A DNA stretch of 63,153 bases, filler included, from Reticulomyxa filosa (Eukaryota; Protista; Foraminifera), in NCBI GenBank assembly GCA_000512085.1. It is 14 parts of 14 records of this genome, joined end to end, with 100 filler letters (N's around TTAATTAATTAA, not from the genome) between each part and the next. Parts side by side here need not be neighbours in the genome. Positions count along the whole stretch, not along the records: positions 57,974 to 63,153 come from ASPP01004949.1; 13 more parts are not named here. One strand, given 5' to 3'. The translations under genes and the position numbers were made by a program. The notes under the pieces are model-generated. The model worked only from the letters and a program-made list of their open reading frames with translations, did no database searches and was not told the origin of the DNA. This document shows positions 57,974 through 63,153 of the stretch, piece by piece. Positions within the stretch are counted from its first letter, which is position 1. Each line of letters opens with the position of its first letter.

Positions 57974-58221
57974 CTGGAAGTGCCAGAGGTGGTCATTATT
58001 TTGCTTATATCAAATGTGGACAACGATGGTTTGACTGCAACGACTCTAGTGTTACTCGAATTTCGGAGTCACATGTATTATATGTAAATCTGTTTACATT
58101 TCTTTTTTATAATAATAATTATTATTTGTATTGTTGTGAAATAAAGGTAACTGATAATGGTCAAGGATATGTGTTTTTCTATCGAAGAAAAACGTTATAT
58201 CAGAGTGAAAAACAGCTCTAA
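57974..58221 (+). CDS. Ubiquitin-specific protease (USP/C19), last two exons, 5' partial
   Basis: His box GSARGGHYFAYIK...WFDCNDSSV, an intron, then GYVFFYRRK...* at 58221. Confidence 0.87.
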
Positions 58222-59103
58222 AGTTTTTTAATATTGTTTTTTTCATGACAATATTTCAAAAAAAAAAGAATTTCAAAGTCAAGCTTTTTTTTTTTATACA
58301 ACTTGATTATGCTTGTTTCATTTTTAAAAAAAATTTGTCGTTGCTTTTGCAATGAAATTTATATTCAATTACTTAACAAATGTTCTCTCGATGCGATTAT
58401 ATATAGCAACGTAATTGAAGATTGCAGGTAGAATTAAAAAAATTGAAACCTAATTTATTTTTTTTTAACAAAAGTACTGTAGTACGAAATGTTTTTTATT
58501 TGTAAAACTTTTTGAGCGTCTTATGAGATGATCAATTTTCTATTTAAAAATCAACATTTTGATAACTTTACTAGTAATATTTCAACTTGTAATGATTTTT
58601 AACAATCAAAATTTTGTGTTAATGCTATTTTTGACTTGCTTATGTTTTATTATTTATGTTACTTTTATGTTTTAAAGCTTTTTGTTTTTTAAATAGCACA
58701 GAAAACTTTAATCTTTTTATTATTAAAATTTTAGAGTTAAATATAGATTGATTAAAAAAATATTTGCTTTAAAAAGACTTGATATTATTGTTATATCTTG
58801 AATATTATTTTAATAAAAATATTAATACAAAAAAATTGTGTACTTATCAACAATACATAAGAAAAAATGTAATTCTTGTAAATATAATAATATATAATAA
58901 TATTGTTTAAAAAAACATCTTCAAGTACATTTCATTTTTTTTCTAAACAAAAAATGTTTGATTATCTTCATAAAATACTATTTTCATGGTATCAAGACTT
59001 TTGTCCTTACATATATTGTTAAAATAAAATATCAAAATTACATTAAATAACTGACTTTTTTTTTTTACAGTTTTTGATTAAAATCCTCTCAAGATATTCT
59101 AAA

Positions 59104-59622
59104 ATGGCACATGCTTCATTTGAAACTAATGAACAAGAGGGTATAGAAGGTTGTGTAGATGACTTTATAGATGATTGTTTGGATGAATTTTTGGAAGGCA
59201 ACGACCCTAAAGCAAAAGTTTTCAAGAGGATAGTCATACAAAAAAGTAATCAAAGACAAATAGTCTTGAAGAATGCTCGAGGTAATTGGACATTACAAAG
59301 ATTAATTGAAGCATTAAAAGATGAAGATTCAGATCTTTCTGGTTTCAGTAATTTTACTCTCATTTATAATAGTCATGTACTTGATGATCAAGTTTTGTAT
59401 GAATTACGTACAGCAAAAAAAAAAAAAAAAACAAAAACATTTAAAATAAATAAATAAATAAAGAAAAAAACACTTTGGGATTATGGAATTAAAGACGATG
59501 CTATCATTAGAATAATGTTTACAGTACTTGGTGGAGTCACCTTCAAGATAACAACAATGATATGTTCTAAAAAAAGGAATAGAGAATATTTTGACATTGT
59601 CCACAGCAACAAAGAGATATAA
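59104..59622 (+). CDS. Divergent ubiquitin-like protein with acidic leader, VLGG motif and 28-aa C-terminal extension
   Basis: Exon 1 is 59104..59391, with a phase-0 intron at 59392..59463. Exon 2 KKTLWDYGIKDDAIIRIMFTVLGG parallels ubiquitin [23 protein letters not shown]; GG at 59530..59535. Confidence 0.75.
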
Positions 59623-60072
59623 ATATTTATAACAGATTGGATAAATTGTTTTCCCCATTCAAGGTAAATGTTTACTCCATTTTTTTTTATTTTTGGAGTG
59701 AAGCAATTATTTTATTTTTACTAAAAGATTTTTTATTTGGATAATAAGAAATTATAAATTATATACATATAAAATAGGCCTTTTGCCTTATTTTTGAGTA
59801 TCTTATTTCTGTCACGTATCTGTTTGTAATTGATTAAAGTGAACAGATGATTCAATTGTTATTGATCTATTCTCTAGCATCATGTTTTTTGTTTTTTTTA
59901 AGATTTTATGGAATTGAAAAAGAGTGATTATATGTGTTTCAAAACTCTTTATTTTTGATTACAATCAATTAATTTTGAATTTTTGCCCACATTTTAAAAA
60001 AAAAATAATTAAGAAGACAAACATGCAATTATTGAAAAAAAAAAAGTTAGAGTTATTTGTTACACATAAAAT

Positions 60073-61408
60073 CTACTCTCCTTTTTCCATTTTTTCATAA
60101 AAGAATACGTACACACACGTCGTTCTTGATGGATTATACGTGGCTAAGTGTATATATTAAAAAAAAAAATTAGTAATGATTTGTGATTATGAAAAAAAAG
60201 AAATAAAAATAAAATAACTGAAGTTTGCTTAATTGTAGAAAGATCATTGCAATAGAAATATTGATTATTGGTTCTTTACATAAGCATTGCAATGTCTATA
60301 TTTGCTATGACCCAAGTGACAACATTTTATCTATTTTAATCTATTTTTACACATAAAAATTTATTATTATTATTGGAAAAAAGTAAATAAATATATGTTA
60401 ACTGATAGATTAGCAATCATATTCAATTTTTTAAGATCAATCAATGGATCTATAGTAAGATTGGATAGTATTCTTGAATTTTCAATTTAATAATTAATAC
60501 TTGATGGAGTTGCCATATCTACACATAGGATATTTAATATTATTTGTAACTTCTTTTGTTGAGTTTTGTAGATATACATTTCCTTTTAATTGATCAATAT
60601 ATTAATTCTATGTTTTATAGTTAGTTTTTTGTAAGACACTTTTTTTTTTTTTTTTACTTAACATATTCGTTTAATGGATATGAAATGGATCAATATACAA
60701 ATTTATCAAATAATACATGTTCAAAGGAACATTTCAAGTATTTTTGTGTTCTACATTCCATACCTTTTTTTTTTTTTTTGAATATATTTTCAAATTATAA
60801 GTAAATAATAACGTATACAATCACACTCTTTTTTTTTTTTCTTTATATATAAATATAAATTTAACAAAAGTTTAACCTAAAACAAATAACAAAAATCGAA
60901 ATGGATCATTTTGTTTCCCTGAGTAAGAATCGAGATCAATATTTACGGATCGAATCTTTTGAACAAATTCAGTAACTTTTTCTATACTTTAATTATTTAT
61001 TGCCCAATACACTGAAAAAAATGATTTTACAATTGTTATTGAAAGAATTATATATATTGAATAATATATATATTGTCTAAATTTTTGACAATGAGCTAAA
61101 CATTGCATTATTGAATTAGTATAGCAAGAGTTACTATTCCATTTCAACGCTAATGGTTTTTGTATTGCTACATATACACATATATATATATTATTTTTTA
61201 AAAATAATATAATCTTCTAACTGTTATATTCAAAATCATTTTGTTTTATCTTGTATTTTTATCATATTATGATTTACTTATTTGCTGTTCTTTCAACTTT
61301 AATTCCTCTATTTTATAATTAAATGTTTCTTTTATTTCTTTTTGTAACTCTATTAAATTTATTTTTTAATTCCTCTTTCTTTTTGCTAAATTTGTTGTTT
61401 GATTTCAT
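60073..61408 (-). pseudogene. Decayed ubiquitin-specific protease (USP) gene, absent from the ORF track
   Basis: Minus strand, in correct order: Cys box LALKWNSNSCYTNSIMQCLAHCQKFRQY (Cys at 61124..61126), GKQNDPF, VLIIKLK, His box HLGHSKYRHCNAYVK/QYFYCND, and YVFFYEKM. Stops and frameshifts throughout. Confidence 0.75.
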
Positions 61409-61683
61409 TAATATTAAAGATATATAATTGTTAATGTTGTAGAAAATAATAAAATGCATTTTTTAACTTAGAAAAATTGATTTATCTTTATAAAGTACTG
61501 GTAAAATGATACTTTATAAAAAATATTTTTTTTTTTTTTTTTTAAGAAAGAAATCAGTTGAAATAATATTTTTCGTAATACACTATCTTAAAATATTACG
61601 AAATGAATAGAAATTCAAATTTTTTTTAAAATTGAAAAAAAAACAATCATATACTGTAATTACTTTTTTTAAAGAATTTGTTT

Positions 61684-62833
61684 TTAATTTGGAACAACTG
61701 TGCAAACAACATTAGAATGTTCTGGTTTCCATTGAACGAGACAGATCATACAAAATTCACCTTTGCAATCAGGACATTTTACATGTTTGCATCTTTCTGT
61801 CCATTGAATCATCTATAATTATTAATATATAAATATATAAATATATAAATATATAAATATGTATATATTTATATATAATTGAAACTGCTCTGCATTGGGT
61901 ATTTAGACAAAGTCGTAATGTTGGAACATTTGCAATACCACTAATTGTTGCAGTTTTACTATTTCGAAGCAATTCTTTAGCTAGAGGAGATATTTCAGTT
62001 TCTTTATTTGTACTCTGCTCATATTTTGCCATTAAATCTTTATTTTCTTCTGGTGTTAATTGTGCTAACCATGCAAAATCTGAAAAGGATAATGATTTTC
62101 CGCAACTTGTTGAAAATTGACATTTCAAGACACTTGGTCGGCGATTATTGATTTCATCTATAAAAAAAATAATTTATAAAATAAGAAAAACATGGAGTGA
62201 AAAAAAAAAATATATGGAGTAAAATAAAATTTGGAGTAAAATAAAATTTGGAGTAAAATAAAATTTAGAGTATATCCAAACTTTTCAACATATTATACGC
62301 TGTTTCAGCTGATGTAACTGTACCACAACATGAAATTTTTGCATTATAATATCCTTCCACTAATTCATAAGTATGACTAAAACATCCATCTTTTACAGGT
62401 ATAATATTCTTTGGCCAAGTTGTTAAATCCTTTGGATATTGACGTTGTATAGAAGTTCCACCAAGAACATGCCAAACAGTGGATATCATAGAATTATCTT
62501 TAAATCCAAGTTGAGCTAAAGTTTTACTCTATTTAAATTAAAAAACAAAAAAAAGAAATATATAATTAATTTATTTTTTTTTGGAGTTAGTTATTCTTAA
62601 AAGTACAAAACTTTATCATTCAGCTCATGACTGTTTAAATAAAGAGTAACAGATTTTGCCTCAGCAAAATTTGAATCTTTATCTTTCAATTCTTCTAAAA
62701 ATCTTTGTAATGTCCAATTAGATGGGATATCTTTTAGCATAAGACGCTTTTGATTACTTTTGTTAACTACAATGTTTTTATAAATTTCAACATTTTCTGC
62801 AACAAAATTGCCAAGATTAAGTTCTTCGTCCAT
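61684..62833 (-). CDS. Ubl(VLGG)-RING1-like-RING2(Rcat) RBR-family-like E3 ligase, 4 exons
   Basis: Exon 1 is 62833..62612; exon 2 starts at 62528 (SKTLAQLGFKDNSMISTVWHVLGG). Degenerate RING follows (CFSH..AKISCCG..CQFSTSC). RING2 reads CLNTQCRAMIQWTERCKHVKCPDCKGEFCMICL, with the stop at 61684. Confidence 0.78.
62216..62266 (+). repeat. Intronic tandem repeat, 3 x 17 bp
   Basis: GGAGTAAAATAAAATTT repeated three times. Confidence 0.9.
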
Positions 62834-63153
62834 TCTTTTTTTTTTTTTTTTATTAGAAAAGAAGTTAGTTAATTAAGCAAACAAACAAACAAAAACACTT
62901 CAAGGGGTTTACTTTTTCTAATAGTTCATTATTACAGTAGAACAAAAAAGAAAGTTGATACCTAAAATGGCACTTTATGAAGATAATTGATTTTCTCCAT
63001 GAAAAAAAACAGTATTTAATCAAAATTTTTTAATTAAAAGAAAATATCTATGAATTGTGTAGTTTTTAAATATCATCTTTTAAAATTTTTTTTTTTTTAA
63101 ATTTAAGCTCATCATTTGTTTTTTTTCTATTTTAGTTTTTAGAGATGTTTTAT

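Follow-up and report, generated by a model that had tools for sequence, protein, structure and literature searches.

A putative foraminiferan ubiquitin ligase family with an N-terminal ubiquitin-like domain ending in a conserved Gly-Gly

Introduction

We describe here a ubiquitin-system locus of Reticulomyxa filosa, a naked freshwater foraminiferan, and the ligase family to which two of its genes belong. The locus is contig ASPP01004949.1 of assembly GCA_000512085.1, the whole of which makes up positions 57,974-63,153 (5,180 bases) of the window, the entire 63,153-nucleotide stretch that was analysed. The contig has a GC content of 16-31%, with exons richer in GC, and carries four features: the C-terminus of a ubiquitin-specific protease (USP) cut by the contig edge, a small gene for a ubiquitin-like (Ubl) protein (RFI_05707), a decayed USP, and a gene for a ligase with an N-terminal Ubl (RFI_05708). 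Just two are annotated, RFI_05707 as a hypothetical protein of 188 residues (P0001) and RFI_05708 as an "IBR domain-containing" protein of 289 residues (P0002). An initial reading of the same DNA (the original prediction) had placed four ubiquitin-system features on this contig, and Pfam, our own profiles and gene models locate each of them where it had been put; its remark that no E1 or E2 is visible also holds for the contig, where Pfam searches of the exons and leftover open reading frames (ORFs) detected neither. A domain search of the remaining ORFs returned no domain, and an Rfam search of the contig gave zero matches.

Results

Two Ubl genes on one contig

The ligase gene RFI_05708 is composed of four exons:

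62612-62833, minus strand: exon 1, start of the Ubl, corresponding to residues 1-74 of P0002
62282-62528, minus strand: exon 2, end of the Ubl with its Gly-Gly codons at 62462-62457, then the linker and a RING1-like region poor in zinc ligands, assigned from the family alignment
61886-62157, minus strand: exon 3, encoding the final RING1-like Cys pair, then a helical linker, the point where the IBR was deleted and the first RING2 Cys pair, assigned from translation and alignment
61684-61812, minus strand: exon 4, encoding RING2 (Rcat), whose active-site Cys is codon 61791-61789, with its His and the stop; Pfam IBR_1 E 1.6e-6, IBR E 8.6e-6

The small Ubl gene RFI_05707 has two exons:

59104-59391, plus strand: exon 1, opening with the ATG at 59104; acidic N-terminus, then the Ubl up to two thirds of its length; 65% identity to the environmental relative P0003
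59392-59463, plus strand: intron of 72 nt, phase 0, GTTTTG...AG, interrupting the Ubl at the point where an intron of the ligase gene does; P0003 and a second relative, P0024, align across it with a 24-residue gap
59464-59622, plus strand: exon 2, last Ubl strand, VLGG, 28-codon tail and stop, with 41% identity to the paralogue over 27 residues

The splice models rest on colinearity with intron-free relatives and on database protein P0002, to which our four-exon ligase model is identical residue for residue (289/289). Independent annotation therefore chose the same splice sites, and all three ligase introns are confirmed by this protein. In the small gene, the colinear alignment of P0003 and P0024 agrees both with the spliced model and with a start at the ATG of 59104. 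The public model P0001 reads through the Ubl intron, so that the last strand and VLGG are lost, and adds about 70 low-complexity residues upstream of that ATG; from these alignments, the public model of RFI_05707 is probably wrong at both ends.

We note that four of the five introns on the contig have GTTT donors (GTTTTG twice, GTTTGG and GTTTCA; positions 59392, 62611, 62281 and 61885) rather than GTAAGT-like ones, the USP intron being the sole one with a GTAAAT donor, and that the acceptor is AG in all five. Two of the ligase introns consist mostly of tandem repeats, one of a 17-nt unit present 4.1 times (62204-62272) and the other of an 8-nt TATAAATA unit present 7.2 times (61820-61877).

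The Ubl is ubiquitin-derived and keeps its Gly-Gly

The two Ubl domains of the contig are paralogues, as originally proposed. Their proteins match in both exons (exon 1 at E 1e-17, 47% over 59 residues; exon 2 at E 2.5e-4, 41% over 27 residues), their phase-0 introns interrupt the alignment at one and the same column and have the donor GTTTTGTA in common, and both domains end in VLGG. A 59-nt block covering the NWTLQR...LKD helix (59283-59341 and 62662-62720) has 85% nucleotide identity (50/59), compared with 47% for the domains as proteins, and may reflect local gene conversion or a very strong constraint on the helix.

Single Ubl exons are not recognised by Pfam, and a half-profile of exon 1 run against solved structures gave only spurious helical-repeat matches to the LKDKD helix, which we discarded. 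On residues 1-105 of P0024, the Pfam ubiquitin family scores 24.4 bits (E 2.4e-5), slightly below its cut-off of 25.4. A seven-sequence Ubl profile searched against solved structures finds polyubiquitin at E 3e-7 in a list made up of ubiquitins, ubiquilins and RAD23, and its alignment spans ubiquitin from residue 1 through the C-terminal Gly-Gly (GG). The predicted fold of the P0002 Ubl (pLDDT 72.7, core 75-85) has its strands and helices in the order of ubiquitin, and in Foldseek it superposes on ubiquitin and NEDD8 with a target-normalised TM score of 0.80-0.86 at about 2 Å. Profile and predicted fold thus agree on a ubiquitin (beta-grasp) fold, and together they indicate that the Ubl is a ubiquitin-derived domain.

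A GG at the position of ubiquitin G75-G76 is present in all nine family sequences (9/9), as VLGG, VVGG, VAGG, LHGG or LRGG, the last being the ubiquitin tail itself and found at the end of the Bolivina Ubl. It is retained even though identity between the Ubls of the freshwater and marine clades falls to 16-26%. Loss of the GG among paralogues, named in the original prediction as a finding that would speak against it, is thus not what we see.

Within the freshwater clade the Ubl exon is the best-conserved part of the ligase, at 60% identity as against 45-47% elsewhere, RING2 included. The ratio of nonsynonymous to synonymous substitution rates (dN/dS) is about 0.15 for exon 1 of the small gene against P0003, with synonymous sites near saturation, and 0.19-0.26, where computable, for the ligase exons against P0004, a public gene call for the same protein as P0024. 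In the Ubl tree the freshwater and marine clades split with full support and both window genes group with P0003 at 90/88; the tree does not resolve the timing of the short, Ubl-only form of the gene relative to the species split.

A RING-between-RING ligase with a degenerate RING1

Downstream of the Ubl, RFI_05708 departs from the standard RING-between-RING (RBR) arrangement in two respects. It lacks a RING1 with the full C3HC4 set of eight zinc ligands, with five Cys and one His between the GG and the linker helix, and it has no IBR between RING1 and RING2. The RING2 (Rcat) with its active-site cysteine is present in exon 4, where Pfam IBR and IBR_1 both score above their cut-offs. The Ubl and RING2 of the 'Ubl-RING-RING2 E3' described in the original prediction therefore stand, and its RING is better called RING1-like, a designation based on position, since most zinc ligands are missing. 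No Pfam RING family matches this region in the ligase or in its relatives, and exon 3 has no match among solved structures.

The IBR of P0024 (residues ~230-280 in the alignment to the R. filosa protein) has no counterpart within the continuous exon 3 of RFI_05708. The gap lies inside one exon and therefore represents an in-frame deletion rather than a missed exon, and no IBR remnant was found in the ligase introns.

Members and architecture of the family

An exhaustive profile search of 1.84 billion representative proteins recovered four true representatives: the two window genes, P0003 (227 residues) and P0004 (319 residues). Ranks 5-23 of this search were rejected as spurious helical-repeat noise on the LKDKD helix. 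A word search with the family alignment added the environmental P0025/P0028 and three proteins of the foraminifera Nonionella stella and Bolivina argentea (P0026, P0027 and P0029). Every named member is thus foraminiferan (R. filosa, N. stella and B. argentea), the others being environmental. On the environmental contig L001 (30-1089) the JGI call P0004 starts at an internal GTG, and the ORF begins with an ATG at position 30 and encodes 352 residues, the protein we refer to as P0024.

Complete members consist of a Ubl ending in GG, a linker of about 25 residues with a conserved YP...WPK, the RING1-like region, an IBR and RING2. In P0024 the IBR is recognised by Pfam at residues 207-262 (IBR, E 6e-15). 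The RING1-like region is short of several zinc ligands in every member, the freshwater clade conserving only C, CC and C-x5-C, and the marine members keeping C-x-H-x2-C and C-x2-C with two other ligands absent. By sequence the IBR and RING2 are closest to those of ARIH2, CUL9 and ARIH1, and the RING2 Cys falls at their catalytic position, followed by x-His. We consider it very probable that these proteins form a ligase family with a Ubl(GG), a degenerate RING1, an IBR and an Ariadne-like RING2. The family is new, found in Foraminifera only so far, and no description of it was found in the literature.

These results sustain part of what the original prediction said of the Ubl and revise the rest. 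The Ubl family is real, derived from ubiquitin and restricted to one lineage, and it is tiny rather than expanded; expansion therefore does not explain the adjacency of Ubl and USP genes. The Ubl is not, as had been supposed, a free-standing modifier, being instead the N-terminal domain of an RBR-derived ligase family, with the GG internal in seven of the nine members.

The small gene as a short form of the ligase

The spliced protein of the small gene was compared exon by exon. Its exon 1 has the highest identity to P0003 (65%), then to P0024 (54%) and to the ligase beside it on the contig (42%). A word search with this exon gave no match, the annotated model differing from the spliced one. 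The VLGG ends at 59535 (GG codons 59530-59535), after which the small gene has few residues in common with P0003 and then stops. The two tails, 28 residues in the small gene and about 120 in P0003, barely align, with only about nine codons of the tail alignable, and no exon matching the rest of P0003 was found downstream. P0003 itself continues past its VVGG into a decayed RING1-like region that has no cysteines and ends where the IBR would start; no continuation was found in the other frames of its contig after that end.

We read the small gene, described in the original prediction as a 'Ubl precursor', as a truncated derivative of the ligase family that keeps the Ubl, the GG and a short unconserved tail, because P0003 retains a decayed RING1-like region and the small gene stops soon after its GG. 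A short form of this kind, with the Ubl as its only domain, occurs in at least two species (the small gene and P0003). Judged by substitution ratios, its Ubl, 64% identical to P0003, is under purifying selection, and the combination of a constrained Ubl with an unconserved tail is what one would expect if the tail is discarded.

The acidic D/Y-rich N-terminus is similar in P0003 and the small gene and is absent from the ligase forms. In the small gene it contains a 24-nt tandem repeat in 2.3 copies (59142-59197).

The USP genes

The remaining two features of the contig are both USPs, which were examined with Pfam and with our own USP profile built from 32 metagenomic USPs:

57976-58083, plus strand: second-to-last exon of the edge USP (His box), Pfam UCH E 1.2e-6 at profile positions 208-243 of 254; the 5' part lies beyond the contig edge
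58084-58146, plus strand: intron of the edge USP, 63 nt, phase 0, GTAAAT...AG, read from the sequence; USP relatives align across it with a 21-25-residue gap
58147-58221, plus strand: last exon of the edge USP, YVFFYRRK motif and stop codon, aligned to the USP C-terminus
60992-61147, minus strand: Cys box of the decayed USP, catalytic Cys present; Pfam UCH E 3.4e-6, 20.7 bits with our own profile, tblastn E 0.011
60076-60156, minus strand: probable C-terminal motif of the decayed USP, VYVFFYEK; 4.0 bits at profile positions 378-396, weak evidence

The edge USP carries no annotation in the record. What lies on the contig is its final ~60 residues only, from His box to stop, with the Cys box off the contig; it matches our own profile at E 1.2e-12, and its Pfam UCH match exceeds the cut-off. 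The His-box region is 50-64% identical to many marine eukaryote USPs and, judged by that region, the protein appears to be a generic USP. We note that its intron is in frame and free of stops, such that a transcript left unspliced would still encode a USP, lengthened by 21 residues ahead of its last conserved motif.

The original prediction was right to call the minus-strand USP decayed, the basis being a recognisable Cys box and in-frame stops, one of them (60991-60989) directly after that box; the parts that can be demonstrated are the two ends. With our own profile, the C-terminal fragment (60156-60076) is the second-best stop-free fragment on its strand, the Cys box being the best, and outscores every fragment of the control strand. 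The two lie in the correct order, and the ~1 kb that separates them, which contains many stops, fits a catalytic domain of ~330 residues. The middle of the remnant was unrecognised by Pfam on stop-free fragments, by tblastn with full-length USPs and by a six-frame profile search with X at stops; the C-terminal motif has no Pfam match, and a significant His box was not found. Read from these disruptions, the remnant is a pseudogene. A 'FLKCGQKF' match at 60000-59977 was rejected as a piece of it, and is judged to be chance because its order relative to the C-terminal motif is wrong. A single minus-strand Ubl-RBR-USP fusion gene is also ruled out, the ligase stopping where its relatives stop too.

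Discussion

The properties of this family suggest a model in which the ligase would take ubiquitin, or a ubiquitin-like protein, from an E2 onto the RING2 cysteine and then pass it on; by analogy with other RBR ligases, we infer that it works via a RING2 thioester. The Ubl-GG junction would be a cleavage site for a deubiquitinase, and the proteins would be made as Ubl-fusion precursors, much as ubiquitin-ribosomal protein fusions and FUBI-eS30 are. A USP (USP36) cuts the GG-ended Ubl off its fusion partner in FUBI-eS30 (PMC8354635, PMC10611586). We favor cleavage after the GG because the GG survives the divergence of the Ubl around it and because, in the short form, constraint on the Ubl and retention of the GG go with a tail that varies. 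The junction may well be cleaved, although we hold this tentatively.

Several considerations weigh against this model. Parkin and HOIL-1 are RBR ligases whose N-terminal Ubl can function without being cut off, and the GG could be a hinge kept for structural reasons. RFI_05708 itself may be losing function, because it is the longest branch in the Ubl tree, has no IBR and has a degenerate RING1. The predicted fold of the whole P0002 protein, at a pLDDT of 39, is too poor to use. The nine family sequences amount to only about five independent lineages, and the environmental contigs (~1 kb, gene-only) are assumed to be transcripts, with no poly-A at their ends.

The strongest alternative, and one we regard as somewhat less likely, is that the Ubl stays attached as in parkin and HOIL-1 and regulates the ligase in cis, by auto-inhibition or activation, or docks a partner; the GG would then be a relic or hinge, and the small gene a decaying duplicate or a decoy. 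The Ubl-then-RBR order matches parkin and HOIL-1, which are also the nearest clusters in a language-model search for look-alikes (a lead only), the GG is internal in 7/9 members, and the GG is followed by the linker with its conserved YP...WPK, all of which fit an attached domain. However, the GG is kept while the remaining Ubl falls to about 20% identity, and the Ubls of parkin and HOIL-1 are not known to have retained one. The short form, which retains a constrained Ubl and GG next to a decayed ligase part, is also hard to square with a Ubl whose role is purely regulatory.

A further alternative is the full private conjugation module of the original prediction, in which the neighbouring USP would mature the Ubl and the Ubl, once activated, would be conjugated to targets with the RBR-type ligase next to it as its E3. 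All recognisable genes on the contig belong to the ubiquitin system, with domain-free ORFs left over, the Ubl family is so small that the adjacency is no by-product of expansion, the GG is conserved, and a Ubl-only form exists in two species. Nonetheless, we consider such a module unlikely. It is seen in one genomic context, the relatives lying on ~1-kb gene-only contigs; the two USPs are a 60-residue fragment and a dead copy; the former is generic, at 50-64% identity to many marine eukaryote USPs in the His-box region; and there is no E1 or E2 on the contig. The two USP-Ubl adjacencies also count as one event, because of local duplication. With tens of USPs among tens of thousands of eukaryote genes, a USP neighbour is unlikely by chance for a gene specified beforehand, but the contig here was chosen post hoc from a large scan. 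An evolutionary extension of the same idea would be a private foraminiferan modifier born from the N-terminal domain of an RBR ligase, released after the GG by the linked USP and attached by the parent ligase, with the Ubl-only genes (RFI_05707 and P0003) representing a stage at which the modifier becomes its own gene; this too we think improbable.

The birth-and-death evolution envisaged in the original prediction is visible at the locus in the paralogue pair, the IBR deletion and the dead USP. That the locus is genomic debris altogether, with all four features decaying duplicates in a repeat-rich, fragmented genome, their adjacency due to local duplication and no gene now working, accords with the stops of the USP pseudogene, with the IBR deletion, degenerate RING1 and longest tree branch of the ligase and with the truncation of the small gene, but is very doubtful given that neither Ubl gene has a disrupted frame, that their GT-AG introns are intact and conserved in position, that dN/dS is 0.15-0.26 against environmental relatives, and that the catalytic Cys-x-His of RING2 is intact.

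We have thus defined a foraminiferan ligase family whose members are listed in databases only as "hypothetical" or "IBR domain-containing", and have corrected the gene model of RFI_05707. In this family an RBR-type ligase has persisted although its RING1 is half-degenerate and, in one species, its IBR is gone. Should the Ubl indeed be released by a cut after its GG, the family would supply the first known case of a ligase made as a Ubl-fusion precursor, and could show a new modifier arising from an enzyme's own domain in a major group of eukaryotes whose ubiquitin system has hardly been studied. RBR-type ligases with an N-terminal Ubl are already known in kind, and the unusual feature here is the conserved GG.

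Among known systems, the Ariadne RBR ligases (ARIH1, ARIH2 and the RBR module of CUL9) are the closest by sequence. The IBR and RING2 of P0024 align to ARIH2 at E 7e-6, and the RING2 of the window ligase aligns to those of ARIH1 and CUL9 with its Cys on the catalytic position, followed by x-His. However, the foraminiferan family has neither the Ariadne domain nor an acidic or UBA-like N-terminus, carrying an N-terminal Ubl instead; its RING1 is short of most zinc ligands and the R. filosa gene is also without an IBR. Parkin and HOIL-1 (RBCK1) share the arrangement of a Ubl followed by an RBR module, and were the nearest named clusters in the language-model search, a result that serves as a lead only. 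Unlike parkin, the foraminiferan proteins have no RING0, with ~25 residues separating the GG from the RING1-like region and no match to parkin-type RING families in Pfam, and their RING2 is nearer to Ariadne than to parkin by sequence; unlike HOIL-1, they have no NZF or LTM. Lacking both RING0 and NZF, the foraminiferan ligase is therefore neither parkin nor HOIL-1.

ISG15, with USP18 and HERC5, resembles the arrangement put forward in the original prediction, namely a young and fast-evolving Ubl that starts out as a precursor with GG and tail and has a USP and an E3 of its own, although the E1 and E2 of ISG15 are known and its genes are unclustered, whereas processing and conjugation of the foraminiferan Ubl are hypothetical. 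The Ubl-fusion precursors (ubiquitin-eL40, ubiquitin-eS31 and FUBI-eS30) differ in that the partner here is a ligase and not a ribosomal protein, that the foraminiferan Ubl diverges fast between clades, and that cleavage here is predicted; they nevertheless share with the foraminiferan proteins a GG-ended domain of the ubiquitin fold that is fused before an unrelated protein.

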